Assembly: GCA_040285825.1 (NCBI GenBank)
Contig: JAUPSS010000012.1
Coordinates: forward strand, 434,001-498,000
Direction: 5' to 3'
DNA length: 64,000 bases
Source: Eukaryota sp. TZLM1-RC
Taxonomy: Eukaryota > Protista > Metamonada: BaSk clade
Each line of letters starts with the position of its first letter. The stretch's first letter is position 1. The position numbers and the translations under genes were made by a program. Under the pieces are notes generated by a model. It made no database searches. It was given only the letters and a program-made list of their open reading frames with translations, and was not told the DNA's origin. This document shows positions 14,748 to 64,000 of this stretch, one piece after another.

Positions 14748-14925
14748 TAATTTAAATATAATACAGTAAAGAAAAATAATAATAATAATAATAAAAATAA
14801 TAAATAAGGACCTTGAAAAATATTTTCAAGATTATGACCTTGAAAGACTAAATCCCATGAACAAAGTACTGGTTGATCCAGGGAAAACGGATCTGCTATG
14901 CTTGTATGGAGAAAGTAAAAGTACC

Positions 14926-31200: not shown

Positions 31201-31378
31201 GGCAGCATTACCTGAAAGCTTAATTTTAACTCCAACAATTTTATTAAAAAATCGGAGATTTTTTTTCATAACAACAACAGTAGTTCTTTCAAAGTTATTG
31301 TCAATGAAAATAAATTGTTTACGAGAGAGAGTTTCAATATCATCTAGAAGAGTATATATATTATATATATACAAATAT
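28252..31378 (-). mobile_element. RLE non-LTR retrotransposon, copy 1 (disrupted)
   Basis: Nearly identical to 60886-64000. Lesions: frameshift near 31189, TTA>TGA at 29393, 18-bp duplication near 30320. Flanked by ACCATATATTA at 28241 and 31379. Confidence 0.92.
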
Positions 31379-31742
31379 ACCATATATTATATTTTTTTTG
31401 GTAAATGTACCATAAATGAAATGTTGTACCATAAAAGGCATTTTTTATAGAATACCTGTAATCCATACAACTTTATTGCCTGAAACAAAAGCTCCATAAA
31501 ACAAGCAATGGAACAGTTATAACTTAGCAGTTTTTACGTGGTCTACCTCGTGGAAGTTTCATAGGAGGCACTTCAAATGCAGAAAGATTTCTACGGGTAC
31601 CTCTAGAACCTAAAGGTCGCCCCCTTGTCTTTTTTACAGAAGGAGCAAAAGGTATGTTCTGTACGGATGTCACCAATTGGTTTATAGAAGACGTCAGAAA
31701 TTGACACTGTTCTTCGGATAGCGAAGCGGATGAAAGAAGCTC

Positions 31743-41659: not shown

Positions 41660-42012
41660 CAAAGATACTTTACAGTGAAATTAGATTCATGTTGAAGGAT
41701 TTAATCAATAATCATTTAAAAATGATGCATTCCAATGTAAGGTTTAACAACATAAACAACAATTAATTAATGTTTTGAAACACTTGCATTGTAATTTCCA
41801 ATGATTGTTCAATTTCCAATGATTCGTTGGTGAAAAGGTTGCAGAGTTGAAATTAAATTCAACAACTTTATAAGTATTTAATTCTATGAAGTGAAAATTC
41901 ACGTACAATGTTGTTTAAAGTGAACTCAACCTGTAGAATCATTAACAATTGTTAATGCAAAATTCATCAGCCATTCATCCCATTGTGTCTTTAGTAAACG
42001 TTTCTCAGCCAT

Positions 42013-42172
42013 TGTTAGCCTTGGATAATATTTATAATAGTTTATTTATAGTTTATTAATAGTTATTGTAGTATTGCGCCCATGCGCTTAAGTTAAGGGA
42101 AATCCTCATTCCCTCGTAATAAATCTAATTACATTTAAGGTATACTCAATGTCTAACCCCCACAGATCATCA
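42013..42172 (+). repeat. 5' LTR of element A
   Basis: 159/160 identical to 49234-49393. Confidence 0.97.
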
Positions 42173-45100: not shown

Positions 45101-48100
45101 ACCAAAAGGAGCAAGTCGCAAATTAAGAAAGAAAGAGATAAAGCTGGTCTCTGTAGATTCTGTGGTTTTCCAGGCCACTCTATTAACGAATGTCCCGACC
45201 CTGATTGCCAGCGATCCAAGCAATGGCGAGATGCCAACCCAGATGCCGTTCGAGCATATTTGGCTAGGGGTAGTAGTAATAGTAGTAGTAGAGGCAGAGG
45301 TAGACGTAGAGGAAGAGGCAAGGGCCCTTCTAGTAGTAATAAACGTTCCCATAAATATTCAATGTTTACTATAGAGCAAGATAGCTCTCCAACAGGTAAT
45401 ACATCAAAGCAACGTTCAAACAAATGTTCCTTGTTTACTATAGAGCAAGACAGCTCTCCAGCATGTAAAACACCAAACATAAAACAAACCTCAGTCTCCA
45501 ACCAGTGGATTAAGTGTTTAACTAATCCTTTGACTACCCGGAATTTTAAAACAGCTACAACGATAGAAACACCAAATAAACCCTGTTTCAATCATGAGTT
45601 CGACTCGAACCCAGACTCAGAGTCCCACAGCGATATCTTCATGGTTCGCACCTCAGATGTCGCACGCAAAAATTTAAAATTGAAATTTTCAATAAATAAC
45701 TGCGAAATAGAAGGGATCATCGACTCTGGAGCTTCGATATCAGTCATCACTGTTGATTTAGCAGAGAGATGCAACATGGTAAAGACTAACCATTGCATAA
45801 ACTTTAAGTCTGCAAACAACATCATGTCGAAGTCTTTAGGATCAGCAGAAGGCACACTGAGCTTCAGACTCGGAAGTGTAACCCAATTAGTTCATGTGAA
45901 ACATAGCTTGGCCATCATTCCTGGCAACAATATGTTACTAATTGGTAGAGACCTGTTGCATCACCTAGGCTTATTGAACGATGAAGGCCTCTTCATCAAG
46001 ATGGATGAGGAACATCGTACATTACTTCTGCCTGAGGCTGAATTCGACCATCGAATCTCCCAAGTCTCAGATGTCGTCAACGTCCCCAGACGTTGGTTGG
46101 AGCACATACAGTCTTCTGGTTGTACTATTAACCTCGACTGTGATAACGACAAGAAGACCTTACTTCTAACCTTGAAAGAGTTCGAAGAGACATTCACCCT
46201 TAAGCCGCATGCTGATGGGATTGACTGTCCTCCAATGGAGATCAACTTTCATGATGAAAGTATTCGAGTCAGACGACCCCCTCGTAGGTTAAACCCCGAA
46301 AAGCAGAAAGTCGCCGAACAGATCTTCGATGAACTCGTCGAGTCTGGATTTGCTATACCATCGAACCATGAGTTTAGCTCTCCAGTATGTCTTGTGGTAT
46401 ACCCTGATCATCGTAAGCCTCGCCTTACTGGTGATTACAGCGGCAAGGACGGAGTCAACGCCAACACTATTCCCGTTGAACCTAATCTCCCCAGAATATC
46501 CGATGTGCTAGTCTTCCTTTCGGAAGCCAATTTCATCGGTACCCTTGACCTCCCCAAAGCCTTTTGGCAACTAAAGATTGCAGAAAAGGACTGGGAGAAG
46601 ACTGCCTTAAGCATCCCTGGCAAAAGTATCATGTTTAAACGTGCTGCTTTCGGCCTCAAGAACGTTCCTGCAGTTTTCCAGAACGTTATGGCAGACATCT
46701 TCTCCGGAGACGGTGTATTCATCTATATAGATGACATCATTATAGTAGGTAGAACCTTCAACGAGTTTTTCGGACGTCTAAGACGTGTCCTCAAGAAAGC
46801 TCGAACCCGTAGAGTTAGCCTTGGACTGCCCAAGTGCCATTTTGTGTCCTCTAGACACCCAATAAAGATCCTTGGTAGCAGATTCCAACACAAAACCAGG
46901 ACCATAGATCCTACACGCACAGAGTCTTTACTGAATCTTCCCAGACCTAAGACTGTGAAAGACGCCCGTAGCCTTGTCGGCTCAGTCAACTTCATTAGGG
47001 AATGGCTTCCCCAGGTAACCAAGCATGTTGCCCCGATCATCAAATTAACACACGGCAAACCACGTCGCTTCCAGTGGAAAGACACTCACGACTACCATTT
47101 AGCCGAAATCAAACGTCTGATCGCGGAGCATATGCCTCTCAACTTACCTCCGGTGGATAACCAAATACTAATTAGTTGTGATGCCTCTGATATAGCAGTT
47201 GGCGGCGTGATTTGGGAACAAATAGAACCCACTAAGGACCCTGGTACTTCCTTACTCAATAGGAAATGTAGACCAATCAGCTTCTTCAGCAGATTGTTGA
47301 CTAACTCCCAGCAGAACTGGCCCACGGTACAGAAAGAGCTTTATGCTATCCTTCTCATGCTTACCGAAAGTGGCTTCGAGAACTACCTCAAAGGAAGGCG
47401 TCTGATCATTTTCACAGATCACCAAAACCTTACTTACATGCTTACCGCTCCGAACAAAAACAGAATAGTCAGAAGGTGGCTTCCCATCTTTTCTGAGTTC
47501 CTATTCGACATAGTTCATACAAAAGGGGAAGAGAACCATTGGGCAGACATGCTATCTAGGATAGTACCGCCCCAAGACAATCATACCATCAACCATCTGG
47601 TACATTCTAATGACCAAGAGTTTCACCCTATCTACTACACAAATAGGATTGACGAAACTGAGTCAGAGAGATGCTTCGTTGAAGATCTCCATACATTTGA
47701 GAAGGTGCTCATCCTTCAAGACAAATGCTCCAATGACCTTCCACTCTTCGAGCCATGGCTCTGCAAGATCAGGTCCGAACAAAAGCGAGCCCTCGCTAAC
47801 CAGGACACCTCGTTTAACAACTGTACTTTGGATAGTCGTCTAGATCTTTATCTGACTCCAGAGCACAAGATCGTGATTCCTCAATCACTGGTTAAGGATA
47901 CGCTTAACCTTCTACATGGACTCCCGCAAGGTGGCCACCCCAGTAAGGCAGAAAGTCTCCTCAGACTCAAGAACAGCGACTACTGGTGGCCTAACATGCT
48001 TTCAGACATGACCAAGCACGTCCAAGAATGCCCCTCCTGTCAGAAGACAGCAGCAGTCCCCAAACTGCATGTCCCTACAACTGGTTCCTTGTGGGCTGAC

Positions 48101-49249
48101 AGACCTTTCGCAAGAGTTAACGTCGACGTCATTGGTCCTCTTCCAGAAGATCAAGACGGCCACAGATACATTCTTGTATTTGTGGATAGCTTCACGAGGT
48201 TCACTATCATAGTCCCTTTCAAAGAACTCAACGCCAACCTTACCGCTGACGCTCTCATATGGAAGGTATGCGCGATATTTGGGATCCCGTTCATAGTTCA
48301 TAGTGACAACGGTCCTGAGTTCTCTAAAGCTGTCTTCGACGCTCTATGTGAGTGTTTGGGCATAGAGGTCTCAAAGTCCGTCCCTCACTTCTCTCAGTCC
48401 AACGGTTTAGTCGAACGCCGTCACCGTGACATTTTGCAGAATTTGAGGAAGCTGCTCGTAGATTTTAACGCCTACGACGCATGGTCAGAGTACATACCCT
48501 GTGTACAATTGTTAATCAACTCATCCAAGAGTTCGATTACAGGTTACTCTCCATACGAGCTCATGTTTGGTTCAGATTTTAGCTCAAGAGCTGACCCCGG
48601 CAAAATCATAGAGACTCTCGAAAGCTCAACGTCTGAGTCAACCTACATCAACAACATTCAATCCAAATTTGCCAGATTGAAGAAGAAACAGGAGGAAGCA
48701 GAGCTCCGTCAAGCTTCCAAGGCTCCTCCTCGTGATTCCCAAATCGAAGCCAACCCTTTCTCTCCTGGCCAATTGGTCAAACGAGCTTCGTCTTCCACTG
48801 CTAAGTTACATGGTAACTACAAAGGACCATTCTTAGTTATTGACACACCCTCTACCTCCACAGTTGATATCAAAAATCTATGCACTGGTATGGTTGTTAA
48901 AGCCAGTGTGAAGCATCTCCAACCTTGGCATTCCAGTTTACCAGCTGATGATGAATTTCACTCCTGGGTTGCTGCTGGTGATGCAGAAGAGCACGTGATC
49001 CAGAAAGTCCTCAGTCAGGATGGTGATTACTGTCAAGTCCAATGGCCTGGCAATCATATTACCACTGAGCTGGTTTCGACTGTTCAAAACACCTCTGCCT
49101 ATAAAGAATTCTCCAAGTCTGTTTCTAATACTCGCTCTCGTCCTTCACGCCGTAAACGTCGTTCTGATAATATTAACAATAATGTTAATCCAACTCCTAT
49201 CAGGCCTCGACGTTCGAAAAGAAGAAAGGGCAGTGTTAGCCTTGGATAA
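42149..49249 (+). CDS. Gag-Pol polyprotein of element A (~2366 aa), interrupted by one TAG at 44660-44662
   Basis: ORFs 42149 and 44702 share a frame. Motifs: CRFCGFPGHSINEC, IDSGA, LDLPKAF/YIDD, CDASD...TDH, integrase HHCC with SDNG/NGLVER, GPF, and a chromodomain-like tail. Confidence 0.92.
42753..42850 (+). repeat. 45-bp coding tandem duplication (PSTSSTEAPGEGQQ x2)
   Basis: Read directly from the sequence. Confidence 0.85.
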
Positions 49250-49393
49250 TATTTATAATAGTTTATTTATAGTTTATTTATAGTTATTGTAGTATTGCGC
49301 CCATGCGCTTAAGTTAAGGGAAATCCTCATTCCCTCGTAATAAATCTAATTACATTTAAGGTATACTCAATGTCTAACCCCCACAGATCATCA
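49234..49393 (+). repeat. 3' LTR of element A
   Basis: Followed by TSD CCAT at 49394-49397. Confidence 0.97.
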
Positions 49394-49777: not shown

Positions 49778-50610
49778 AATACCTTATTCGTTGAGAGTTC
49801 TTCCGTATGTCTTAAATTGTTTGTTTAAATTAGAAGTGATCAGGCTTCTAACTTGTAAAGTTTCTAGACATATGATTGAAGCATTGTAATGCAGTTTGAG
49901 ATAGATTTCAGCTAGACGACATAACTAAAATAGAACCAACAGGTAAAATCTTTGATGATTTGGCGCAGTTCCTGAATGAACTTGTTAGCTATGGCTAAAC
50001 CTGACCTTCCAGTTTCGGAAAGTATCACGTGACCAAATCATTGATGATTTAAAGCAGTTCATCAATGAACTTTATGATTGACTAACAAAAAAAAGATGGT
50101 GCAAATTTATTACTTTCAACTAACCACTGAGTGATGATTGTTTATTTTAATTGGTCGAATAGCACATCCAATGTTGATCTACTTGGAAATATATTTCTTG
50201 CAAACAGGTCACTATAGAATGAAAATCAAACCAATGTAATATTTGAAAGAAAGTAATTTTACAATCAAATATTATGATATTTGTCAATATGATTTAATAA
50301 TTTTTCATTGAAGGGAAAAAAAGACCAAAATTACTCATTTATTTGGATTAAACCTTCGAAAATTAAAGATGATTCAGATTAATACTCAGGATTTATATAA
50401 AATTATTATCAGATTAATTGAAAAACAAAGATTAAAACAACAGAAAAAGAGATGAACAGATGATATCCAAAAATGTTAACAGAAGAACAAAATAATTTCT
50501 TTCATCCTTTTTCATATTGAACAAGCCAGTTTTAAGAAAAATGGTTATAAATTCAATATTTCAATATTTCAGTTTGTGTAGAGAGGGTCAGAGAGGATTG
50601 TTTTGGACTT
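49778..50610 (+). repeat. ~830-bp dispersed repeat, copy 2
   Basis: Collinear with 13925-14747. Confidence 0.9.
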
Positions 50611-50889
50611 CAATTTTAGTTAGGGTTTTACTGATAATGTAAATGGCTTCTGCTATGAGAATTAGGTCGGATTAGGTCGGAATATAGTATGAATTTCTGG
50701 ACTGTGATGGGATTTGGTAGAATGAGAAATATGGTCATGACTGTTTGTATCGGAGGATGAGGAGAACCCTCCTTCGGACATAATGTTTGTGTTGAAACTA
50801 AACACCTTTATTCAAATAAATTTACCACTCATTTTGTAGTGGAAAACAAGGTCACAAACCTAATCTTAATAAACAAGACAATTTTGTAA

Positions 50890-51090
50890 TATTATAAAAG
50901 TCGACAAGCAGTTTCATGGGGTTTGAGGCAGTGTAATCAATGCAAAACGTTCTGGAATCGAGATACCAATTATGCTCTAGATATTCTGATGTTGGCTGAA
51001 CACATTCTGGATGGAAGAGAGAGAGATCAGAGGTGTTTAAGAAACAACAGTATCAAACCAAAGTTATTGAACCTACTGATGACAGTTTAA
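50890..51090 (+). pseudogene. Fanzor1-like C-terminal remnant
   Basis: Open frame reads SWGLRQCNQCKTFWNRDTNYALDILMLAEHILDGRER (Zn-ribbon plus RuvC-III WNRD.N motif). Confidence 0.75.
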
Positions 51091-51746
51091 AGGCTGCTGG
51101 AAAGGGTACTGAAGGTGCTGGTATACCTATGAGTCCGATGCAACAACCTGATCTCAATACATTATCACCAGTAGCGAAAGCGAAAGTTGAAGAACAATGT
51201 ATAGTTTTGAAGTAACTTAAGAAATCAAGCTTTTGTCTATTTAGGTTGGTTCTTAGGAGAAAGGCCAAGAGCGAATGTGGTTAGCGAACTATTGTTAGTT
51301 AGCAACGCGACAATTGTAGGTGTAAGGGAGTCAGAAATGTTGTTTTCGCTGACGTTGTCAAGTCTTTACATCGGAGAAGATAGAGTTGGTGTAAGAGAGA
51401 AGTTGTGAATGTTGTCCTGTCAAGAGTCATTGTTAGGTTCAGTGGTTTCTATTTAAAGATAAAAGAAGTGTCAAGTTGATCAGATTATGAAAAAAAAACT
51501 TTATGCGAACTCATTGAAACAACACGTTCTTTTGATTGAATATGCTACTGTTATCACCGAGAAAACTCCTTCAACTGTAACCTTTTCACGAAAGAAAATA
51601 GTTTCGGCAGCTTAAATATCACGTATTATAGTGTTTAATTATCATTTTGCTCAGGCTTTGTATTTGTATAGATGTAAGAAGTTGTGAATAAATCAAACTT
51701 TTATTGTTGACTGTCTGATCTTTTCTCGACTGACATATTCACCCCA

Positions 51747-52512
51747 ATGGCAAATACAGAGTTGCCACGTCGAGGGCGTGTACTCCCCTGGGAGGTTAAC
51801 CGTCGTGAGCAACCCATAAACGACAGCAAGACGACAGTTCCAGCAAGTGCTGCTCAGTTCTTCTCTACTGCAGCTCTTGTTTCAATGGAAAGACAGTTTT
51901 GCTATATTCGCACTGTCACTGTGCTTACTGCCCGGTTAGCACAGCTGTTCGTCCTACAATATTCGGAAATGGCTTTCTGGTTATATCAACAACAGTTTTG
52001 GTATCAATGTCAAGACTTTGTAATGGTACCTCATCCGACTGTGAGACGCCCATTCGAGAATCATATGGAAGTGTACCGCGCACTCTATGATGTCTCTTTC
52101 CGACCTGGCTGGCCGTTTCCTCCTATTGGCTTTCAGAAGGGAACCGACAACTGGTGCCACTCTGACATTAGAAGCTTTCGCGCACTGCAATTGGCGAACA
52201 GCTTTTGTCAAATACTTACTGATGGCCCTGTCTCCTGGAAGCTGAACTTCCTATTTATTCAGCAGGTTGCCGACCCTCATCGTTTTGACGCTATGTTGAT
52301 GCTGGACAATGTTGATCTCAGTCCAGACAACATCACCTTCTTATTCACTGCTGGGCTAAATATTTTATCCTTTCTGGAAAATATTGCATCTGACACCATG
52401 CGAAGAAATGCAGTGTCCCCATCCCCCAGTTATTCTTCTGGCTTTATCTCTTTTAGTCAAAAACTGGAAAAGCATTTTCTCTCTTTTAATGCCAACCACT
52501 GTCTGCTGAAAG
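51747..52512 (+). pseudogene. Fanzor1-like RNA-guided nuclease, 5' part (WED/REC), interrupted by LTR element B
   Basis: After removing element B and one AAAG TSD copy, the frame continues AAA G|AT CCG (HCLLK-DPFAFF). Confidence 0.8.
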
Positions 52513-52666
52513 TGTTAGCTGGAGCTAAACGTGACTTTCCCTTTTAGGAAAGAAGATCACGTCATCCTTAGTCTAAATTCTAGTTTTGTTTTATTTTTGT
52601 TTGATTTTCTTATATTCTGTTCATAAACTTCCGTAATTGTTTATGTTAAGTGCACGTAAAGCAACA
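52513..52666 (+). repeat. 5' LTR of element B
   Basis: 152/154 identical to 59564-59717. Confidence 0.97.
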
Positions 52667-54545
52667 GTAATTACTGGAGCCCGTAAGGAATCCAACCTGT
52701 CTCATGTCCCCGTCCAGAATTCCGCGAACCTGATTGCTCCATATTTGAATCATACCGGTAGAGAGTCCGTCTCCCGATATGTAGAAGCATTGAAGGTTTA
52801 CGCTCAGCGTATGTCTTGCCATGTCATGTCAGACATGACAAGATACCCTCCTGACGCTAACTCCCAGTCCTCATCCGCCAAAGAAGTTACCCGCTCCCCC
52901 TCCGCTCCCGACACTGACCCTACCATCTCCGCCATGTCTAAGGAGATAGAAGACTTGAGAAGCAGACTCTCCCAAGTCTCTTCTCAGTCCCAAGTTTTCG
53001 GTGAAGCCTCCGACTCTGACACTGAGCCCATTCAAGCCAATAAGTGCTCTACCCCCGTTTCCTCTTGTCCTCTCAATGATCCCGCTGAAGGCGCTGACCC
53101 TTTCCCATCTGATTCTCCGAACCACTCCGGATTAGCTTCGTATGAACTCCGTAGCAGCACTGAAGAAGACCGCCTCTTCGAAGCCATGTTACCTTATGTC
53201 CCGTATACTATTGCTCCAATTGTCTTGGAAACGTTCGAAATCTGCCATGGTATATATCCTAGAAGTCCCTCTGCTATCCTGACTCATCTCATGTCTATGT
53301 GCCAGTTCGAAGACCCTGCTAGTGTGTACCAACGATTCCAGTCCCTCCGTCTCTCTCTCCGCTCCAACAGTTGATGAAGCTGTCACATCTTATATCTCTC
53401 AGTTCCTCAAACTAGTCCGACTCTGTCCTTCTCCTCTTCCTGAATCTGCAAGGATGAAGTTTTTCTCTAACGGAATCCGCCCCGACAAACTCAAGATGGT
53501 GATCAAGACTGACATTGAAGTTGGAACCATCTTCAGCTTCGCCTCTCTCGTTTCCCACCTCCGTGAACTCCTCCCTGCTTACCACCTCCCCTATTCGGCC
53601 TATCATGCCAATAGAGACATTGCTCCTCCTCCTCCTAGAGACTCTCGCCCTCCTCGACGATCTTCCACTTCTCCCAGAACTACTAGACACCCTCCTCGTA
53701 ACTCTTCTTCCCATCCTGCTCCCTCTTCAGCCAAGCCACCCGCTTCCTCTCAATCTCAACGCTCTTCATATTCTACTCCTGCTCATAGCTCTTCCGTGAC
53801 CTGCTTCTACTGCAAAGAACCAGGCCATGTAATCAAAGATTGCCCCAAGTCCGGATGCAAAGCCAGCCAGAAGCCTCGTCGACGCCCTCTCGGAAAGAAA
53901 CCATCCCTTCAAAGGAAGCACTTCACCAGAAGAAGTGTAAACCAAGTAACTCATGCTGCCCATGATAACCGCCCTGACTCCGTAAACTTCATTATCGATT
54001 CAATTCAAGAAGCTATTCAAGAAGATCACCAAATAGATGCTACTTATCTTCATGGTTTGAGCTCCTCCTCTTTTTCCTCTGACAATGAGCCGTATAGAGC
54101 CACCTTGAATCCATTTTCTACAATAAACCATAGTACTTACTCTTCCTCTCTACATCAACACCCTGCTATGGTATATCAGCAAGCCGAAGATTTTTAACAC
54201 CTCTTCAACAATCTTGAATCTTTTACCTCTGCCCTAGCTTCACGAGACAACGCCCTTATCTCTCCCTATCCGTCATTCTCTGATTCTGGATTGGACTCTT
54301 CCTCTGACTCTCTGTCCGAAGCGTCCGAAGTAGTTTCTAAGGTAGACTCTAATAGCCATATGGTACCGCCAGGCAACGCTCCTTCCCGCCAAAATGGTTC
54401 TTTGCTGTTGGAAGCTAGTCCCGACCTCAGCTCTGAACCAGGGATGATCGACGCAGACTGTGCTCGTCACCACGGTGGAGTAACGCGTGGACCTTTAGAA
54501 TCTCACCTTAAGAACTCTTCAAAGCCAAAGACTCAGAGTCCTTAG
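52643..54545 (+). pseudogene. Gag of element B (frameshift in a CT run near 53350; TAA at 54195)
   Basis: KFFSNGIRP and CFYCKEPGHVIKDC; the frame stays open past 54197 to 54545. Confidence 0.8.
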
Positions 54546-54610
54546 GAACTGCTCCTGCCCAGAGTTTTGAACCGTTTGTCTCCTTATCACCCCAGGAACT
54601 CAATAAGCCC

Positions 54611-57600
54611 TTGGATAAGAAGCTCCCCCATCTCAAGATCTTTGTTGATTCTCAGACTATGCTCAATGGAATGGTAGACACTGGTGCTACCGTATCTTGC
54701 ATTTCTCATGACCTTCTGAAGCAAGCTAAGCTGAAGCTTACCTCTAAGACTCTAGAAGTTGGTTTAGCTGATAAAACCAAGCTCTCCTGCCCCCTTGTCT
54801 CTGGAAAACTCGCTTTTGCCCTAGGTGGTGCTACTAAGCTCACCTATGTGAATGTAACTCTGGCTGTCTTGCCCTGCTCAAACTCCTGCATTATAGGATG
54901 CGACTTATTAAGAAAGCTCGGCATTCTGACCTCCGATTATTTGTTCTTGAACCTCTCTGCCAGGAACCTGCAAATTCTCGAAGACGAAGCCATACCTGAC
55001 CAGTACATACCACCTTCTGACCAAGTTTCCTCCGTTTCTTCTCTCCCTGATCTAGACAAAGCCTCATTCAAGCTGAATGATCCAGAATTAGAAAGCTCTG
55101 TTCGATCCCTCTTGTTCAAATATCCAGAAATCTTCTCGAAGCTCCCTGACCCCCAAGGAATTGACTGCCCTCCCATGCGAATACCGTTTCATGATGAGTC
55201 CAAGATAGTAAGCAAGAAGTTTCGCTATCTCCCTCCTGATAAGCTAAAGGTAGCCAACGAGGAATTTGACACTCTGATCAACAATGGTTTCGCTGTGCCT
55301 TATGATGGTCCCTGGAGCTCCCCAATCTGCCTCGTTCAACGCCCTGACAAACCCACTAGATTAACTGGCGATTACTCTGGCGCCGATGGCGTTAATGAAC
55401 TTTCCATCTCCGTCCCCGCTGACCTCCCCAGAATTTCTGATGTTTGCCAATTCCTATCCGGTAGCCACTATATTGCCACGTTAGACCTACCGAAAGCCTT
55501 TTGGCAGTTGAACTTACACCCCGATGATCAAGAGAAATCCGCCATAGCTATCCCCGGCCGCAAGATCAAATACACCCGCGCTGCTTTTGGACTGAAGAAT
55601 ATCCCCGCTATATTTCAGAACTTGATGAAGAAGGTATTTAAATCTGATGGTGTCTTCATCTACATGGACGACATCATCGTAGCCGCCTCCGATAAGAAGT
55701 CCTTCCTGACCAGACTAGAATTCATTTTCAAGCAAGCCGCCAAGTATAGAATTCGAATAGGTCTCCACAAGTGCTCGTTCCAAACCAAGGAACATCCAAT
55801 TAAAGTCCTGGGATCCATTTTTGAAAACGGCCAACGAAGAATAGACCCCTCCAAGATCGAATCCATAACCAAGCTTGCTCCTCCCTCCTCTGTCCCCGAA
55901 CTCAGATCTTTTATCGGATCTGTGAACTTTCTCCGCGATTGGTTGCCTTCCGTATCCGCTGAAATCGAACCTCTAACTGCCCTTCTCCGAAATAAGCCCA
56001 GAAGAGTACGATTAGGTCCCGCTGAACTCAAGAATTTTGAAAACATCAAGAACTTGATAACTAGTAGTTTACCCCTTGCCCTTCCTGACTCTGATAGCAA
56101 CATCCTAATCTCAACCGATGCCTCTGAAAAAGCCATTGCCGGAATAATCTGGAAAGAACTGGAACCCTCTCCTCCTGGAACTTGTCTCTCCAAGCGTAAG
56201 GTGATGCCCATCTCATTCTACTCCAGAATCTTGACCTCCTCCCAGCAACGTTGGTCTACTCTCCAGAAAGAGTTTTTTGCTATTGTAATGACTCTCAACC
56301 AACCCAACTTGTCGTCTTTCCTACTCACCAGACACTTGACAATCTTTTGTGATCACAAGAACCTTTCGTATTTATTTAGCTGTCCCGACTCGAACCGCGT
56401 AGTACTCCGCTGGATCCCTGTACTACAATCTTTCTCGTTCGACTGCGTGCATATTGAAGGCCCCAGGAATTTTTGGGCAGACTATTTGTCCCGCGCCTCT
56501 CTACTCCCCGAAAAGAAGAAAGAGAAAAACACCAGAGATATCTGTGATAACTCCACCCCTGAACTGTGTTGCATGATGACTTATCAAGACCAGGCCAAGT
56601 CTCCTTTGTGGAACTACCTAAATCTTGATGATCTGAGACACTTCGATACAGACCACTTATATGATATCGACTATAATACAGCTGAACGAATCATCCACCC
56701 TTCCGCTCTCCGCTCGAAGCATAGCACAATAGCTTACCTGAACTCCCTAAAGCACTTCATTCACTACAATGTGAATCCCGGAAAGTATGATCCGCTTGCG
56801 TTCTCCTCCGCCAAGTACTTTATCTTGTCTACCGACCTGCCGTTTCTATATAAGAACGTTTCCGCCCCGAAAGACTATGACTTTAGTTATCCCCTGAACA
56901 TGTTCTCTCGATATCTCACCGTTTATGATATCATCCAGCAAGCTAACTGGAATGCTCGAGTCTATTTCCATCACCCAAGGATGCCCTTTTTGGATTACCT
57001 TCCAGAAGTAGTACCCCAAAACGCTCATTTCATAGTTCTCAATCACATTCCCCCGCGTACCACCATTGGCGATCTGCTCACCGCTGTTAACATATTTCAT
57101 ATTGTTCCCCTCCCCACTCTTATGGTTCCTTTTGACCTCGATCACAATCGCTACATCTCTGACCGCTTCCTTAGCGTTATACTCCGGCCTGAAGCTAAAG
57201 AAGGTGCTTACGACTTTGAACGAAACCTATGGTTTAGAGCCACCGGAGCTAGCGAACGATATGCCTTCCATGATCTCGTCCCTCCTCGTTGTAACCCTCA
57301 GGAATGTCCTGACTCCCCTCGCTGTGACCACTACCCCTGGACTCCTGACACAGGCAAACCCAGTCCATACGGTGAACAACTTTATGATTGGAGTCTTCAT
57401 CCTCGGTTCCACAAATATTCTGATTTACCTTGCTGCAACGTACCAATCAGACCCCTCTACCCTGACTCAAACTACCGAATGTATTTGCTGAACCCTTGTG
57501 TAGATGTAACCACCTACATTCCTCTCTGCCTATTGAAGCCCGTCGTCCACAGAATTTATCATTATGATAACAATGAACTGACTCCTTGCCCCTTTGCCAT

Positions 57601-59569
57601 CCCCGGATTAGAACTAGTCTCTGGACACCAGGTTGATCCCAGCGACCGATCTATTCATTATTATTTAATGCCACTTGATTACTCCTCCGTAGCTGAAGCT
57701 GAATTTGACAACCCTGACCCCGACTTTATTTACGATGACTCGACTACCTGTCCCCACTTCCCAGATTTACTTGACCTATACTTTAATGGACCCATTCAAC
57801 ATCACTCAAGATTGGATTTCATTTTGCAAGACAAGCGACTCGAGATAGTCCCTCACCCCACCCGTTCCATCGCTTTCGCCCTGCCCGGATACCCTGCTGA
57901 TCAACCTAGGTATTACTTACCATCTTCCAGAAGTGAACTGCCGTCTAGATTAGAAATTTTCGAGGCTAACCCATTTATGTTTGACCATGAACGGTTTCTC
58001 AAAGAACAAAGCATGTCCCCTGCCGAGCTCATCGACATTTCCTCTGACTCATCTGACGACGTCCACATCGTCTCGGCAATCCTCTCTTCTAGTACCTCCG
58101 ATTCCTCAAGCCATGGTTTATTGTCGTCCAAACCCATCAGCTCACCGGCCGCTGCGTTCTTGAATAAAATATTCAAATCCCAACAGAAAGTTCCCGATAA
58201 CGATCCCTTGTTCGCTAACTGCCTCATCGACGCCCCGACCGGACTGAAGCTTTCCAAATCAGGAAAGATACTGGTTCCTCCATCCATGCGTTCTGAGATC
58301 CTCCTGCTTACCCATGGATCTATTGAAGCCGGTCACCCTCCTTTCGCCCAATGCTGGAAGTCCCTTCAACAATCAGATTTTCACTGGCCCAACATGCGAA
58401 ATGACCTTTTGACCCATGTCAACTCTTGTATTTCCTGCCAGAAAACTGCCCCCGTCCCCAAGACTTCGATCTCTTCCACTGGATCTCTGAATTCTGTTCG
58501 CCGCCCTTTTGAGAGCATGCACTGCGATTCTATCGGCCCTCTCTCAACTGACACTTATGGCTATAAGTACATAGTCCACTTCGTTGATGCTTTCTCTAAG
58601 TTTAGCATTCTTGTCCCAACCAAGGACCTTAAAGCCACTACTATTGTAAATGCCCTGATCTCCTCTGTCTACTCTGTTTTTGGTGCCCCTCGTTGTATTC
58701 ACTCTGATAATGGCCCTGAATTTGCCAATAAGATATTTAGCTTGTTATGTCAATTTTTGAACATCGAACACACCCAATCCCTACCCCACTACCATCAATC
58801 CAATGGCCTTGTTGAACGCCAACACCGAAGTTTCCTCCAGGTAATCCGACGTATGCTTCTTGATTTTTCAGACTACCACAATTGGTCAGACTATGTCCCT
58901 CTTTGCCAGATGGTCCTGAACTCCCAGGAAAGAAAAGCTCTGAACTCATCTCCGTATCGCCTCATTTTTGGATCTGACACCTCTCCTCGCTTGTTACCCA
59001 ATCAGCTCCTGAACTCTCTGTCCACCCACCCTCTCCCTCCTGACAAACCCGAGTTCATAGAACATCTCGTGACTCTTACTAAGAAATTATTAGTCTCATG
59101 GGAAGCTGTAGCCCCGTCCTCTGTCCCTCTCCCCGTTGATGCACCTGAGCCTCCGTACCATCCTCTGGCCAATGATCGAGTTTTTGTTCTGCGCGAGAAG
59201 CCAGACAAACTACACGGTCACTTCGTGGGCCCCTACATCGTTCTCAAAGTCCTCTCCTCTAGCTCTCTCCTGGTCCAGAACCCCGTTTCAGGTTCGTCCC
59301 TCAAGACTGCCACTCACCTAGTAAAGCCCTGCTTGTCTTCATTGCCACCTGAGATTCTTAACGCCTATGTTGCTGCTGATTCCGGTGAGTTGATCCTGGA
59401 TGCGATATTAGATATCTCTAACGAATCCGCTACCGTGCTTTGGTCTGATGGAACCACCACCGTACAGCCTGTTTCCTCCATTCGGAATACTGCAGCCTAC
59501 TCCAGATACAGCAAGCTTGCCGCCGATACTCCTAAATCCCGCCGAAAAAGAAAGAGAAGGCAGTGTTAG
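54611..59569 (+). CDS. Pol of element B (PR-RT-RH-unknown insert-IN-chromodomain-like)
   Basis: VDTGA, LDLPKAF, YMDD, TDASE...CDH, HHCC, SDNGPEF, NGLVER, GPY; frame is open from 54512. Confidence 0.95.
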   Translation: MDKKLPHLKIFVDSQTMLNGMVDTGATVSCISHDLLKQAKLKLTSKTLEVGLADKTKLSCPLVSGKLAFALGGATKLTYVNVTLAVLPCSNSCIIGCDLLRKLGILTSDYLFLNLSARNLQILEDEAIPDQYIPPSDQVSSVSSLPDLDKASFKLNDPELESSVRSLLFKYPEIFSKLPDPQGIDCPPMRIPFHDESKIVSKKFRYLPPDKLKVANEEFDTLINNGFAVPYDGPWSSPICLVQRPDKPTRLTGDYSGADGVNELSISVPADLPRISDVCQFLSGSHYIATLDLPKAFWQLNLHPDDQEKSAIAIPGRKIKYTRAAFGLKNIPAIFQNLMKKVFKSDGVFIYMDDIIVAASDKKSFLTRLEFIFKQAAKYRIRIGLHKCSFQTKEHPIKVLGSIFENGQRRIDPSKIESITKLAPPSSVPELRSFIGSVNFLRDWLPSVSAEIEPLTALLRNKPRRVRLGPAELKNFENIKNLITSSLPLALPDSDSNILISTDASEKAIAGIIWKELEPSPPGTCLSKRKVMPISFYSRILTSSQQRWSTLQKEFFAIVMTLNQPNLSSFLLTRHLTIFCDHKNLSYLFSCPDSNRVVLRWIPVLQSFSFDCVHIEGPRNFWADYLSRASLLPEKKKEKNTRDICDNSTPELCCMMTYQDQAKSPLWNYLNLDDLRHFDTDHLYDIDYNTAERIIHPSALRSKHSTIAYLNSLKHFIHYNVNPGKYDPLAFSSAKYFILSTDLPFLYKNVSAPKDYDFSYPLNMFSRYLTVYDIIQQANWNARVYFHHPRMPFLDYLPEVVPQNAHFIVLNHIPPRTTIGDLLTAVNIFHIVPLPTLMVPFDLDHNRYISDRFLSVILRPEAKEGAYDFERNLWFRATGASERYAFHDLVPPRCNPQECPDSPRCDHYPWTPDTGKPSPYGEQLYDWSLHPRFHKYSDLPCCNVPIRPLYPDSNYRMYLLNPCVDVTTYIPLCLLKPVVHRIYHYDNNELTPCPFAIPGLELVSGHQVDPSDRSIHYYLMPLDYSSVAEAEFDNPDPDFIYDDSTTCPHFPDLLDLYFNGPIQHHSRLDFILQDKRLEIVPHPTRSIAFALPGYPADQPRYYLPSSRSELPSRLEIFEANPFMFDHERFLKEQSMSPAELIDISSDSSDDVHIVSAILSSSTSDSSSHGLLSSKPISSPAAAFLNKIFKSQQKVPDNDPLFANCLIDAPTGLKLSKSGKILVPPSMRSEILLLTHGSIEAGHPPFAQCWKSLQQSDFHWPNMRNDLLTHVNSCISCQKTAPVPKTSISSTGSLNSVRRPFESMHCDSIGPLSTDTYGYKYIVHFVDAFSKFSILVPTKDLKATTIVNALISSVYSVFGAPRCIHSDNGPEFANKIFSLLCQFLNIEHTQSLPHYHQSNGLVERQHRSFLQVIRRMLLDFSDYHNWSDYVPLCQMVLNSQERKALNSSPYRLIFGSDTSPRLLPNQLLNSLSTHPLPPDKPEFIEHLVTLTKKLLVSWEAVAPSSVPLPVDAPEPPYHPLANDRVFVLREKPDKLHGHFVGPYIVLKVLSSSSLLVQNPVSGSSLKTATHLVKPCLSSLPPEILNAYVAADSGELILDAILDISNESATVLWSDGTTTVQPVSSIRNTAAYSRYSKLAADTPKSRRKRKRRQC

Positions 59570-59717
59570 CTGGAGCTAAACGTGACTTTCCCTTTTAGGA
59601 AAGAGGATCACGTCATCCTTAGTTTAAATTCTAGTTTTGTTTTATTTTTGTTTGATTTTCTTATATTCTGTTCATAAACTTCCGTAATTGTTTATGTTAA
59701 GTGCACGTAAAGCAACA
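59564..59717 (+). repeat. 3' LTR of element B
   Basis: Contains the pol stop codon (CAG TGT TAG). Confidence 0.97.
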
Positions 59718-59721
59718 AAAG

Positions 59722-60730
59722 ATCCGTTTGCCTTTTTCAGAAAAAAGAAGTATCTGACTTACACAATCAGTTCAGATGCTGTTTCAATCCGCTTCACTTT
59801 TTCCTTTGCCCCGAAAAAAGATAAGAATCGCCGGACAGCCAGAGAATTGGCAACCACCATAGCCAGTTGGGAACTCGATATACCTGCAAAGAGTCGGAAG
59901 CGAAACTCTAGACTTCAACAACAGGTCCGTCCAAGGCAACGTCGAAGAACTGACGACGCCTATGAGCCTCCGCCAGTTGATCCAATTGAATATTCATTTT
60001 GTGCAATTGATCCTAATCACAAAAATTTGTGTGGTTATTCAATTGGATCAAGAATTGATAATAACAATGTTGATCATCAACTTTCGGGCCTTGTTCTGAA
60101 TCCAAAGGCAAGGAAGATCATTCATTCACCGGTCCTGACCCATGTATCACCAATTGCTATTTTGCTAAGAATTTACACAAATATCTTAATGAAATAGCAA
60201 TGCCTTTGATGTGGGTACCGACACAGGAAGAAATCAGCAATCCCGACTTCCGTCCGAGAACTATACTAGACCAACTGCTGATAAATGGAGATCGCCGAGC
60301 CCTGCGCCGCAACAAGTTTGATTTTTTTATAAGAAGGCAAAAAAGAATAATGGGATTTATTGAAAAAATTAAACTAATGGCTAATGGAAGAAAAACCATA
60401 ATTTGGTTTGGTAGTGGAGGTGATGGGCCATCAAGACAAGCTGTGAAAACCCCAAGGAAGCGCTTTTTGAAGGAGATTCAGAAACATTTTACATATGTGA
60501 AGGCCAATGGAGATGAATTCTACACATCTGCCAAAACGAATTGCTGTAAGGTATTCAATCAAAAGTTGTATCACGATGATGGGAGGGTGAACAATGATAA
60601 GTTTGTATGCCCTCAATGTCAGACAATCTGGTCGAGGGACATCTCAGCTTCCAGAAACCAACTGGAGATTGCCATAAGTGAGCACTACCATAATGAAAGA
60701 CCTGAGGCGTTCCGGAGACCCCGTAGATAA
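59722..60730 (+). pseudogene. Fanzor1-like nuclease, 3' part (RuvC I/II/III, Zn ribbon)
   Basis: SSDAVSIRF, AIDP (D at 60009), IIWFG, GDEFYTS (E at 60515), CPQCQTIWSRD (D at 60638), ASRN and RPEAFRR; one frame change between 60074 and 60197. Confidence 0.88.
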
Positions 60731-60885
60731 GTATTTTTCCATGTATTGCGTACCTGTACGCGTATTGTGATGTTGCTGCTTTAACTATCATTTGATCGTG
60801 ATATCATACAGTGATAGAACTAAAGTATGCTTAACGTCTATCAAGATTGCATGAATTGGTCAAAAGCCAGAAGTGTGTTTTGAAC
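60731..60885 (+). ncRNA. Candidate omega-RNA scaffold of the Fanzor
   Basis: Directly 3' of the stop; hairpin GCGTAC/GTACGC (60748-60761) and long hairpin 60777-60827; position as expected for TnpB/Fanzor. Confidence 0.45.
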
Positions 60886-63800
60886 TTAGGCTTTATTCCA
60901 AGAATGCAAACAAGATTACTATAAACAACAACAATGCAAAGCAATATTCTAGAAAAGTGATCACTGACAAAATGAAGGTAGATTCTCACTATTTACGGGT
61001 TCATGAGCACGTACATTGTGAAACTCAGTAATACTTGAAAGTATTGAGTTAAAATAACGTGGTAGAGCCTTAAAGAGTGAGAAAACAATTCTGTTCTTCC
61101 AAATAAGTTGATCAAAAGAACGTCCTAAGTCTTTTAAGAAACTGCCTAAATCATTCAAGAAAGATAGTCCTTCCCTGCCTAAAGTACCAAAAATAGAAAT
61201 TCCAATTGGAACAAAAACGATGTTTCTGCCACGTTGTTTGTTCAAACGTACAAGTAAATCATTATACTTCGAGTGCTTGCTCCTTTCTGCATTCTTGAGG
61301 GTTGATTCAATGTCGAAAGACGAAGACAACTTCCAAGGAGAAACAGTTGTACAATCAATAATTAATTCCTGGCCGCTATGCCAAGCACATTGAATGTCAC
61401 CTCTTTTTTGACTTTGAGCAAGCTGCATTTCATCAAAAACTGGTTCTAGTCGTACTGGATGATGGGCACTCTTCAACAAATCATAAATGCAATCGCGAAC
61501 GGCATTGTGAATAATCGACCTCTTCTGAGTGAACTTCCTACAAGATAAGACATGAGTATAGGAAGCAACTGCTCCACATTTACAACGAATATTTGTTAAA
61601 CACTGAGGGGGAGGTAAGTTCAAACGTAGTCTCATAATTGTTAAAAACTGGGAATCGAACAGCAACAGACCAAAACGGCGAGGTACTTGGGTTATTAGGC
61701 AAGATGCACTGTTGATAAAAGAACCCTTATCGCAAAGAGAGGATAGAAATGTTGCAAAGGAAGAATCACCTGAATTGTTAGCCAAGCTAATTTGTTGTTC
61801 TAGTGATTCAGCTTCGAGAGCATTCATCAACTTCTTTTGCAGTTTAGGGACAGTTCTCAAAAAATTACTTAAATCATTAACTTCAACAGAGGCACGATCA
61901 ACTGTAGAAGCAAACATTGAAAACCAAAGTTTATCAGGGCAGTTATCAAGGAATATTTTGACAAAGAGAGCAGCACTTGAGTTAGAATTAGTGACTAAAT
62001 CATTCCAGTTATTAGGGAATAATACAGATAATTCAAACAAGAAATTCTTAATGCCTCCCAAGAACGCAGCATTTGTCAAAATGGATGAACGAGTCAAACC
62101 AACACCACCATGCGAATGTGACCTGAAACAGTGAAGTGGAATATCCTTAATGTTCTTAACACTAAGTAAGTCAACCAAAAAGTTGGTTCTTCGAGACAAA
62201 AACAATTTGATTTCAGGTGTGATCAAATCCGGTGGAATAGAGCGAATCAGGTGATTTACTTTAGAACTGAAGCATAACCTATCCACATGAAATTTAATAT
62301 GTTTTTTCAACGGCAAAGCCTGAATTTCATCCAACTTAGCAGATGCACTTTCAATTTCCTTATGTAATGATCTACTAATGGCTGATTCATTTCCAATGAA
62401 AGTACCCAGTAAATCAATACAATCATTTTGATAATCCACAAAAGGAATTTCTTCATCGTTAAGCACAATTGAATGAAACGAACGCCCAAGAACTTGACAC
62501 TTGCTAGCGTTAAGTTCTAGACCAATATTCAGTGCAAGTTTACGAAGATAAATAACAGCTTCGTGTACTAAAGAAGCATTACCAATAAGGGAGACATCAT
62601 CCATGTAAGCAACAACTTTCAAATCAGGAAACCGAGACTTCAACTTTTCAAACAAAGGATGTAGAGCAACACAAAAGAGAAAAGGACCAATGGGATCACC
62701 TTGCTTTACACCTGAGCATGAAGGAATAGAGTCGGTGTCTAATACAAGATTCGAATGTTTGGAATACAAAAACTCGAACAGAGGGGCAACTTCAGCCAGA
62801 ACAGGAGACGTTTTCAAAGACTCAAGAATTGCATTGCGCTTAACTGAATTGAAGGCATTTTTAAAATCACAAATTACTGCCATGTTATCAATTGACAAAT
62901 TCATGAAAAGATCAACAGCAAGAACAGCGGAATTAGCACCGTCATACGTACCGATATCGAATTGAAAAGAACCTAAAAATTCCTTGGCACAATTTTTTAT
63001 TCTAGAAAACACAAGCAAAGACAATAATCGTGAAACAACTTCACCTATGGCAATAGGTCTAATTCCATTATTTTTCTTACTGAGAGGAATTAAACGTAAC
63101 GCAGACAACTCAGGAGGAAATCCTTGAGGATTGAGCATTATCAAATCAAACAATTGGGTCAACGAAGGAATGATTGTTCCAACAGCTTTTGAAGCAGATT
63201 TCAAATGATCAAAAGTCAAAAGGGATGGGCCAGCAGCTCTACCATAGGGACGAGAAGACAGGGAGCGAGATACTTCTTTTTCTGAAAAAGGATTTGATTT
63301 CCAATAATTAAAGGAATCCACTGGGGAAGCAAAGTCAATGGGATCTTCAAAAGGATGTTGTTTCAGCAAAGTTGAAATGGTCTCAGCATTTTGAGAAGCA
63401 AGTGATTGACTAGATAGAGAAGCCATTGCACCACTAACTTTACCATCAAGAAACATTTTTTCAAACCTTTTGCATTTGGAAGAAACAGTAGAAGCTGGAC
63501 GTGTAAGAGAAGCGTTGGACTGAGAAACTGATAAGGAATCCTTAAAGAAATTCCACAACGGATTTATGTCATACACTTTTCGGAATAAGGAATCTAGAAA
63601 GGACTGAATAGCACAACCTAATTTGAATCCTTGACGAGGATTTGGGATTGGCTTCACTTTTAAAGGACATCTCAAAGGATCAAGAAAATCAGATGAAACA
63701 GAGTTACACAACTGCACCTTCATAGCTACTTCAAAATCAGTAAACGGTTTAAAAAGAAACCCAGAAATATTCTCTTCAACCCAAAACTGTTGAAGTCTGG

Positions 63801-64000
63801 ATCTTAATGAGGCAGCATTACCTGAAAGCTTAATTTTAACTCCAACAATTTTATTAAAAAATCGGAGAATTTTTTTCATAACAACAACAGTAGTTCTTTC
63901 AAAGTTATTGTCAATGAAAATATTAAATTGTTCACGAGAGAGAGTTTCAATATCATCTAGAAGAGTATATATGTTATATATATACAAATATTCCATATAT
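60886..64000 (-). mobile_element. RLE non-LTR retrotransposon, copy 2 (ORF intact)
   Basis: Near-identical to 28252-31378; runs to the window edge. Confidence 0.93.
60961..63996 (-). CDS. RT + CCHC + restriction-like endonuclease polyprotein (CRE/NeSL-like grade)
   Basis: RPIAIGE, DFKNAFNS, GVKQGDP, YMDD, CKCG...HVLSC, HNAVRD, RGD..IID and AERSKHSKY; true start uncertain. Confidence 0.92.
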   Translation of the reverse strand: MEYLYIYNIYTLLDDIETLSREQFNIFIDNNFERTTVVVMKKILRFFNKIVGVKIKLSGNAASLRSRLQQFWVEENISGFLFKPFTDFEVAMKVQLCNSVSSDFLDPLRCPLKVKPIPNPRQGFKLGCAIQSFLDSLFRKVYDINPLWNFFKDSLSVSQSNASLTRPASTVSSKCKRFEKMFLDGKVSGAMASLSSQSLASQNAETISTLLKQHPFEDPIDFASPVDSFNYWKSNPFSEKEVSRSLSSRPYGRAAGPSLLTFDHLKSASKAVGTIIPSLTQLFDLIMLNPQGFPPELSALRLIPLSKKNNGIRPIAIGEVVSRLLSLLVFSRIKNCAKEFLGSFQFDIGTYDGANSAVLAVDLFMNLSIDNMAVICDFKNAFNSVKRNAILESLKTSPVLAEVAPLFEFLYSKHSNLVLDTDSIPSCSGVKQGDPIGPFLFCVALHPLFEKLKSRFPDLKVVAYMDDVSLIGNASLVHEAVIYLRKLALNIGLELNASKCQVLGRSFHSIVLNDEEIPFVDYQNDCIDLLGTFIGNESAISRSLHKEIESASAKLDEIQALPLKKHIKFHVDRLCFSSKVNHLIRSIPPDLITPEIKLFLSRRTNFLVDLLSVKNIKDIPLHCFRSHSHGGVGLTRSSILTNAAFLGGIKNFLFELSVLFPNNWNDLVTNSNSSAALFVKIFLDNCPDKLWFSMFASTVDRASVEVNDLSNFLRTVPKLQKKLMNALEAESLEQQISLANNSGDSSFATFLSSLCDKGSFINSASCLITQVPRRFGLLLFDSQFLTIMRLRLNLPPPQCLTNIRCKCGAVASYTHVLSCRKFTQKRSIIHNAVRDCIYDLLKSAHHPVRLEPVFDEMQLAQSQKRGDIQCAWHSGQELIIDCTTVSPWKLSSSFDIESTLKNAERSKHSKYNDLLVRLNKQRGRNIVFVPIGISIFGTLGREGLSFLNDLGSFLKDLGRSFDQLIWKNRIVFSLFKALPRYFNSILSSITEFHNVRAHEPVNSENLPSFCQ

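Follow-up and report, generated by a model that had tools for sequence, protein, structure and literature searches.

A probable Fanzor1 pseudogene from a multicopy, transposase-free family, nested among retroelements in a skoliomonad metamonad

Does the gene lying in pieces at positions 51747-60885 of a 64,000-nucleotide stretch of DNA from Eukaryota sp. TZLM1-RC encode a Fanzor1-type RNA-guided nuclease, and was it an intact gene until a long terminal repeat (LTR) retrotransposon split it recently? Both had been proposed for this stretch (hereafter the window; positions 434,001 to 498,000 of contig JAUPSS010000012.1, assembly GCA_040285825.1) on the basis of its letters and open reading frames (ORFs), an interpretation referred to here as the sequence-only reading. 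Profile, profile-profile and fold comparison revealed that the gene is of the Fanzor1 type. The locus is very probably a pseudogene, that is, a decayed copy of a multicopy Fanzor1 element that lacks a transposase and is nested among retroelements. The host is a skoliomonad metamonad, the paralogues of the window copy coming from the Skoliomonas litria TZLM1-RC assembly. TZLM1-RC, TZLM3-RCL and GEM-RC1 belong to the skoliomonads of Williams et al.; Skoliomonas itself is a metamonad that lives freely in soda lakes (10.1101/2023.05.03.539051). The host is a free-living anaerobic protist.

Three pieces of the gene were identified on the plus strand. The N-terminal, REC-like piece (51747-52512) contains 255 codons plus one base and bears a 138-bp deletion. 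The middle piece (59722-60149) contains the SDAVSI strand, which corresponds to the TDGVS motif of Fanzor1, a basic linker and the RuvC-I sequence AIDPNH. The C-terminal piece (60152-60730) matches the Pfam family Cas12f1-like TNB (PF07282) above the cut-off with an E-value of 8e-7, and shows in order the KFDFFIRRQKR helix, WFGSGG, GDEFYTS, a CC...CPQC zinc site, SRD and RPEAFRR before a stop codon at 60728-60730. All motifs quoted in the sequence-only reading were thus found in the window, as were the three RuvC acidic residues: the aspartic acid of AIDPNH (GAT, 60009-60011), the glutamic acid of GDEF (GAA, 60515-60517) and the aspartic acid of SRD (GAC, 60638-60640), the last of which aligns with the invariant RD of alignment profiles A1, A3 and A7. 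The single protein of 580-590 amino acids envisaged earlier is not encoded, because its reading crosses a frameshift at about 60150-60152; the stretches 59724-60194 and 60200-60727 lie in different frames. The window pieces were searched separately, and full-length analyses were performed on natural intact homologues.

A phmmer/HMMER search with the C-terminal piece against 1.8 billion representative proteins yielded 83 matches, the nearest of which are hypothetical proteins of TZLM1-RC, TZLM3-RCL and GEM-RC1. Single-sequence searches of the window pieces against solved structures gave nothing meaningful, and profiles built from skoliomonad proteins only (A3, A4 and A5) gave nothing significant against the same structures; hence intermediate relatives were needed for the link to Fanzor1. 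Profile A7, constructed from the non-skoliomonad matches of the C-terminal piece alone, matched SpuFz1 (8gkh) over its full length with an E-value of 7e-53, followed by PpFz1 and GtFz1, while its match to Fanzor2, TranC, Cas12f and TnpB was confined to the last ~60 residues. Alignment of A3 with A7 by hhalign gave a probability of 99.7% and an E-value of 7e-26 over residues 214-593 of the homologue P0007, from the WED domain through the C-terminus; the first ~210 residues remained unaligned. The motifs paired between A7 and A3 are TDGV/SDAVS, GIDPG/AIDPNH, RLKFD.YI..QK/KFDFFIRKQKR, FGD/WFG.GG, VDEF.TS/GDEF.TS and C..C...WNRD/CP.C...WSRD, followed by the common RP..F.R tail.

Results from structure prediction agree with the profile comparisons. 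The AlphaFold model of P0007, the closest intact homologue (604 amino acids), has a predicted local distance difference test score (pLDDT) of 79 and a predicted TM-score (pTM) of 0.71. Foldseek placed SpuFz best (E-value 1e-14, TM-score 0.56), with SpuFz, PpFz and GtFz taking ranks 1-7 and Fanzor2 (9b0l) rank 34; among the top 40 matches only Fanzor, Cas12 and TnpB structures appeared. The model of the window C-terminal piece is mediocre (pLDDT 62), and its best matches (PpFz, Cas12j, Cas12f and SpuFz) have weak E-values. The comparison of profiles and folds with Fanzor1 structures, advised in the sequence-only reading and performed here on P0007 and the window pieces, bears out the Fanzor1-like assignment. 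Taken by its features, the family has the TnpB/Cas12-type split RuvC fold with a zinc-ribbon insert (from Pfam and the P0007 fold), and its similarity to Fanzor1 extends beyond the RuvC core to WED and N-terminal additions, the first ~210 residues excepted. It resides in a eukaryotic genome, where LTR and non-LTR retroelements lie inside or beside the gene and paralogues adjoin ordinary eukaryotic genes.

Analysis of the catalytic and zinc-binding motifs revealed several departures from the described Fanzor pattern. Yoon et al. define Fanzors by a near-exclusive DPG at RuvC-I and a glutamic acid six residues before the zinc finger (PMC10711439). RuvC-I reads DPN (AIDPNH) both in the window and throughout the skoliomonad subfamilies, so that the aspartic acid is present and the DPG is not; DPG is invariant in the 20 other relatives. 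The rearranged RuvC-II is found as described, with the canonical strand WFGSGG lacking glutamic acid and the glutamic acid at 60515-60517 falling in the column where A1 and A7 have an invariant E. As its first zinc knuckle the gene has CC, located eight rather than six residues after this glutamic acid and followed by a clade-invariant histidine, and the second knuckle, CPQC, is present. The skoliomonad family departs from both DPG and E-x6-CxxC, motifs by which Fanzors are defined or mined, and regular-expression surveys would therefore miss it. At 60551-60553 (in CCKVFNQK), five residues after CC, the window has asparagine where every other skoliomonad subfamily has histidine. This change is common to the window, the loci L001 and L002 and the proteins P0134-P0136, that is, to the whole subfamily of the window; the replaced histidine is possibly a zinc ligand. 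Overall, the window locus belongs to a known kind, Fanzor1, and the skoliomonad proteins constitute a divergent clade of it (DPN for DPG, CC-type zinc knuckle) rather than a textbook one.

The N-terminal and middle pieces are separated by a 7.2-kb Ty3/gypsy-type LTR retrotransposon on the plus strand (52513-59717). Its direct LTRs, 154 nt each and bounded by TG...CA, occupy 52513-52666 and 59564-59717; the target-site duplication AAAG stands at 52509-52512 on the left and 59718-59721 on the right, and a polypurine tract precedes the 3' LTR. Gag-like ORFs with a CCHC knuckle (52637-54197) are followed by pol (54611-59569, 1652 amino acids), in which the domains are ordered protease, reverse transcriptase, RNaseH and integrase. 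All of these features are shared with Ty3/gypsy (Metaviridae-type) elements, from which the insert differs in its very short LTRs and in a pol that contains a long unassigned stretch after RNaseH and before integrase. Between the two LTRs only two sites differ, 52554 (A/G) and 52573 (C/T), exactly as counted in the sequence-only reading (2/154), which corresponds to a divergence of 1.3%.

Removal of 52513-59721 joins G 52512 to AT 59722-59723 as one codon, and the frame of ORF 51747 continues into that of 59724, in agreement with the in-frame fusion proposed earlier. The corresponding empty site was found in three uninterrupted copies, L001 (on JAUPSS010000004.1), L002 and L010 (both on JAUPSS010000002.1), all from the TZLM1-RC assembly and paralogues of the window locus rather than alleles of it. 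In these copies 52512 is joined exactly to 59722, with ...CTGCTGAAAG on the left of the junction and ATCCGTTT... on the right, ATCCG following the junction and AAAG being present once. The outcome that would have spoken against the sequence-only reading, an empty site not joining these two positions, was thus not observed. Public read contigs under the same organism label show the same uninterrupted junction and loose ends before 59718; these are Logan contigs of DNA runs and derive from other copies (share of words 0.47). Taken together, the LTR anatomy and the empty site, found in read contigs as well as in the three paralogues, confirm that the gene was split by an LTR retrotransposon. Short contigs from another run (X3, organism B of the same study) differ at 0-2 positions from the window Fanzor over 59718-60606, the uninterrupted junction included; a shared element, a very recent transfer and cross-contamination between libraries are all possible explanations of this near-identity.

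Apart from the insertion, three further lesions, none of them noted in the sequence-only reading, were identified in the window copy. A 138-bp in-frame deletion at 52249/52250 has removed 46 codons that are present in L001, L002, L010 and every paralogous protein; the segment is kept as NFF..CP.P..YA...PE..W in the distant subfamilies represented by P0007, P0008, P0009 and P0001. At about 60150-60152 one A has been lost, the window reading CACCA-ATTGC against CACCAAATTGC or CACCACATTGC in the paralogues. The frame is read through at this site (SPNCYF; ...THASPNCYFAKNLHKYL...) in proteins P0013, P0134-P0136, P0138 and P0139 and in loci L001, L002 and L010. An intron between 60149 and 60200 was considered and rejected: the sole in-phase GT...AG pair spans 26 nt, the paralogous protein and DNA sequences are uninterrupted and the TZLM3-RCL genes are intronless. 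The third lesion lies at the right end, where the match of the 3' tail to the paralogues ends at 60884; the paralogues go on as ...GTTTTGA TAGAAATTYACAGTGCA and a read contig from another copy runs past 60883 as TAGAAATTCAC..., whereas the window enters a non-LTR retroelement. The right end is thereby ~17 nt short, and one strand of a conserved terminal stem is gone. With the LTR insertion, the deletion and the 1-nt frameshift, no intact coding sequence is present at the locus, and owing to its four lesions the window copy can yield neither the nuclease nor a full 3' RNA.

Comparison of the copies revealed that the family is present in dozens of copies in skoliomonads. Clusters at 90% identity contain 28 (P0139), 18 (P0127) and 17 (P0132) sequences in TZLM1-RC and 41 (P0124), 24 (P0141), 14 (P0007) and 10 (P0008) sequences in TZLM3-RCL. 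The window groups with P0134-P0136, P0138 and P0139 at 80-94% identity, all of which appear partial or patched by the annotator, and its DNA lies 1-4% from the closest paralogue. Intact intronless copies of 592-605 amino acids occur in strain TZLM3-RCL; four of its intronless genes, of 604/605 amino acids, are 98-99% identical over ~2.5 kb, a stretch that begins ~600 nt before the start codon (ATG) and extends 75-80 nt beyond the stop codon.

The search for uninterrupted copies, suggested earlier as a way to define the ends of the element, was successful for the right end, which is shared, and not for the left end, which varies. The left boundary lies at ~51357 in L001, 51047 in L010 and 50808 in L002; the 5' non-coding part of the unit is given here as 51357-51746 (plus strand), where the shortest paralogue, L001, begins. 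This start coincides with a TCT(C/T)TACA motif like that at the left end of TZLM3-RCL elements. Candidate duplications flanking the unit are of unequal length (5 nt in L005, 11-13 nt in L003), and no convincing terminal inverted repeat of the unit was found. No transposase was found in the repeated unit of any copy, which is consistent with the sequence-only reading; its description of the carrier as undefined can now be narrowed to a unit of ~2.3-2.9 kb with the Fanzor as sole ORF and a conserved terminal stem at its end.

Several observations were made around the fetched copies. The left flank of L003 (5375-5400; GGAATCCACAG CAGTATCTC TACTTATTTGACTGA) is like its own right end and flank (7878-7905; GAAATCCACAG TACTTATTTGACTAA), a resemblance that suggests duplication of a right-end stub together with the target at insertion. 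A gene of 526 amino acids at L003:51-1631 (minus strand), 4.4 kb upstream of an intact TZLM3-RCL Fanzor, matches Pfam DUF8286 and weakly Cas12f1-like TNB, and is possibly another TnpB/Fanzor lineage. Second, degenerate Fanzor copies were found within 2-3 kb of the fetched ones at L001:14223-16638 and L009:2-1310 (minus strand), and on this account the copies tend to cluster. L002 has an insertion of its own, of 523 bp (9292-9815), inside the AIDPNH codons; with a T-run at its start and repeated ATCACAA flanks it resembles a minus-strand retroposed insert.

The 3' tail of the window copy (60731-60884, plus strand) is a candidate omegaRNA or right-end region, cut ~17 nt before the right end of the family. 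In the family the tail ends ...TTTTGATAGAAATTYACAGTGCA, and the right ends have TTTTGA(A/T)A...C(A/T)CAG in common. In five tails, drawn from four subfamilies, the terminal bases pair with an upstream CUGUG or CUGAG, and a single compensatory change is seen (CUGUG/CACAG against CUGAG/CUCAG). Folding compared with shuffled sequences gave z-scores of -2.4 to -5.6 for the five paralogue tails and -1.2 for the window tail, whose terminal stem cannot close because of the missing ~17 nt. The scaffold of a Fanzor omegaRNA is expected at the 3' end, reaching the right end (PMC10530073); by this analogy the tail is the expected place of an omegaRNA scaffold, or else of a right-end DNA hairpin. A right-end-like 11-mer at 28151 (minus strand) was probably due to chance and was discarded.

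How, then, should the locus be interpreted? That the gene is not a Fanzor1 at all, being instead a TnpB from prokaryotic contamination, a gene of the Fanzor2/IS607 type or a sequence whose motifs arose by chance, is extremely improbable. Such a view could appeal to the skoliomonad-only profile without a significant match among solved structures, to DPN in place of DPG, which Fanzors are said to carry almost universally (PMC10711439), and to a first zinc knuckle of CC rather than CxxC. Against these stand the eukaryotic setting with its retroelement interruptions and neighbouring genes, the strong transitive profile link from A3 through A7 to SpuFz1, the three Fanzor1 structures heading the fold search far above Fanzor2, and the glutamic acid in the alternative position beside the canonical RuvC-II strand WFGSGG. 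It is also very unlikely that the LTR element only recently disrupted a Fanzor1 gene that was intact in other respects, such that precise excision would restore a near-functional nuclease. The near-identical LTRs, three pieces without internal stops, the retention of all three RuvC acidic residues and a C-terminal piece 94% identical to paralogous proteins speak for it; the deletion, which affects residues that all skoliomonad subfamilies conserve, the frameshift at ~60151 and a right end that lacks its final ~17 nt and terminal stem speak against it. Moreover, the LTR divergence of 1.3% is of the same order as the 1-4% distance from the nearest paralogue, and so the copy is not demonstrably much older than its disruption, nor demonstrably intact before it. 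"Recent" is for this reason a fair description of the disruption and "otherwise intact" is not; the claim that the protein is close to functional is not supported, given the deletion, the frameshift, the truncated right end and the partial or degenerate state of every annotated subfamily member seen. A dead coding part within a still serviceable non-autonomous element, with an omegaRNA or ends that intact Fanzor copies, or a transposase encoded elsewhere, would serve in trans, is very improbable. The subfamily comprises at least 28 distinct proteins in one 90% cluster (P0139), though the annotated members seen look defective and share the change from histidine to asparagine, and the spread of so defective-looking a subfamily fits trans-mobilisation of the family. 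On the other side, in the window the right end has been cut by the non-LTR element and the 7.2-kb insertion parts the left end from the tail; a search of the public runs, which gave DNA contigs, found no RNA run.

Some points count against the interpretation of the locus as a decayed pseudogene copy. The need for the 46 deleted residues is judged from their conservation among skoliomonads and is thus presumptive, and these residues fall outside the region alignable to canonical Fanzor1 (the hhalign match begins at residue 214 of P0007). The asparagine occurs throughout the subfamily, which may mean either that even the progenitor was impaired or that the histidine is dispensable. The frameshift could be an assembly error, since it lies in a short A run of a Nanopore-based assembly; read contigs carry the +A form only and, being derived from other copies, neither confirm nor refute a frameshift private to the window. 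The ~8 kb of unbroken ORFs in the neighbouring retroelements count against such an error, and the deletion and right-end truncation would stand even if it had occurred. Finally, the omegaRNA role of the tail is presumed. The anatomy, the lesions, the empty site and the family membership by sequence and fold were shown; nuclease activity of the intact relatives and the omegaRNA role of the tail are what we infer.

Under the pseudogene interpretation, the ancestral unit would have measured ~2.3-2.9 kb and consisted of a 5' region of 0.4-0.9 kb, an intronless ORF of ~640 codons and a 3' tail of ~170 nt. The product of the ORF would have been an RNA-guided nuclease of the Fanzor1 type, in which a REC-like N-terminus and WED were combined with a split RuvC carrying the "alternative" glutamic acid and a zinc knuckle. 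Four events are specific to the window copy: the 138-bp in-frame deletion in the N-terminal helical domain; the 1-nt deletion shifting the frame between RuvC-I and RuvC-II; the insertion, between the REC-like and WED parts, of the Ty3/gypsy LTR retrotransposon, still young (LTRs 98.7% identical); and the insertion of the non-LTR retroelement, which shortened the right end by ~17 nt. The order in which they are named implies no chronology, any temporal order being conjectural.

Analysis of the nine fetched copies revealed that the distance from the right end to the next annotated host ATG on the same strand is 3, 5, 10, 11, 43, 43, 45, 301 and 548 nt. Seven of the nine right ends thus lie 3-45 nt upstream of a host ATG (intervals L001:12076-12082, L007:5886-5890, L005:7897-7908, L010:7072-7084, L003:7889-7933, L006:7892-7936 and L002:10700-10746), the exceptions being L009 (301 nt) and L004 (548 nt). 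The downstream host genes include those for a kinase, CRM1, PDCD2_C, VPS51 and a glycosyltransferase, among others, and in a read contig of the window's subfamily an ATG occurs 8 nt past the right end. The window itself is uninformative in this respect because the non-LTR element has replaced its right flank. By rough judgement, not scaled to the real gene density of the genome, seven of nine within 45 nt is far above random placement. A tentative proposal, which we regard as possible and rather unlikely, is that the window holds the wreck of an undescribed transposase-free Fanzor1 lineage (DPN, CC-His, compact and intronless with 590-640 amino acids) whose elements dock before host genes. If it is true, and if the omegaRNA takes its guide from the DNA immediately beyond the right end, the 5' ends of host genes would program these nucleases; the docking would in that case reflect RNA-guided targeting or homing, as opposed to the mere survival of harmless insertions. 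The location of so many right ends shortly before host start codons merits a study of its own.

The surroundings of the gene form a nest of retroelements. A non-LTR retrotransposon on the minus strand (60886-64000; reverse transcriptase ORF 60961-63996) abuts the truncated Fanzor tail with its 3' end, which a second copy at 28259-31387 (98% identity) fixes at ~60886. A second LTR element (42010-49393) has LTRs of 163 nt, an LTR-element remnant on the minus strand, at 23740-27784, is related to this element and to the one at 52513-59717 alike, and a dispersed repeat of ~840 bp occurs at 13925-14753 and 49778-50616. The only other Fanzor copy found within the window is a C-terminal remnant of another, more canonical Fanzor1 ORF (50911-51057, plus strand; CNQC...WNRD...G.ER; tblastn E-value of 0.055 with the C-terminal piece). 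It retains the second CxxC, WNRD and the G..R tail, and lies in left-hand DNA common to L002 and partly to L010; residues 534-582 of a Fanzor1 relative, P0015, match the equivalent place in L002 (E-value 8e-4).

The window locus alone matters little and offers no shortcut to a working nuclease. The skoliomonad family, on the other hand, extends Fanzor1 to a deep-branching, free-living metamonad lineage, and a literature search found no paper naming both Fanzor and Metamonada. The intact intronless TZLM3-RCL copies P0007, P0090, P0092, P0094 and P0008 (98-99% identical) are sensible candidates for biochemistry.

Among known systems, SpuFz1 of Spizellomyces punctatus (PDB 8GKH, 9CEU-9CEZ), PpFz of Parasitella and GtFz of Guillardia have the same domain order as the window gene: a REC-like N-terminus, RuvC-I, a RuvC-II strand without glutamic acid, the alternative glutamic acid in DEF.TS and the zinc knuckles. 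The counterparts of the WED strand TDGVS, the helix RLKFD.YI..QK and the WNRD-type RuvC-III in these proteins are SDAVSI, KFDFFIRRQKR and WSRD in the window, and the RP..F.R tail is common to both. The skoliomonad proteins (590-640 amino acids) differ from them in an identity of only ~14%, an unaligned N-terminal portion of ~210 residues, DPN for DPG, a spacing of eight rather than six between the glutamic acid and CC, and the lack of a recognisable transposase or terminal inverted repeat; the window copy is in addition broken in four places. Fanzor2 and the IS607- and IS200/IS605-type TnpBs (9B0L, mimivirus Fanzor2; 8H1J, ISDra2 TnpB) share the RuvC-zinc-ribbon core and the expectation of a guide RNA from the 3' end of the element, and the alternative glutamic acid is also known from Fanzor2 and "pro-Fanzor" TnpBs (PMC10711439). 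They match the skoliomonad proteins only over the last ~60 residues; the skoliomonad N-terminus is much longer, and there is no TnpA or IS607 context. Jiang et al. (2023) described non-autonomous Fanzor1 carriers, for example Helitron, hAT and long interspersed element (LINE)-associated loci (PMC10530073). The skoliomonad units differ from these in ends that fit no recognised family, in varying left boundaries and in right ends near host start codons; they resemble them in that the Fanzor is the sole ORF of a repeated unit, a conserved, structured 3' non-coding region reaches to the right end, and many copies are present.

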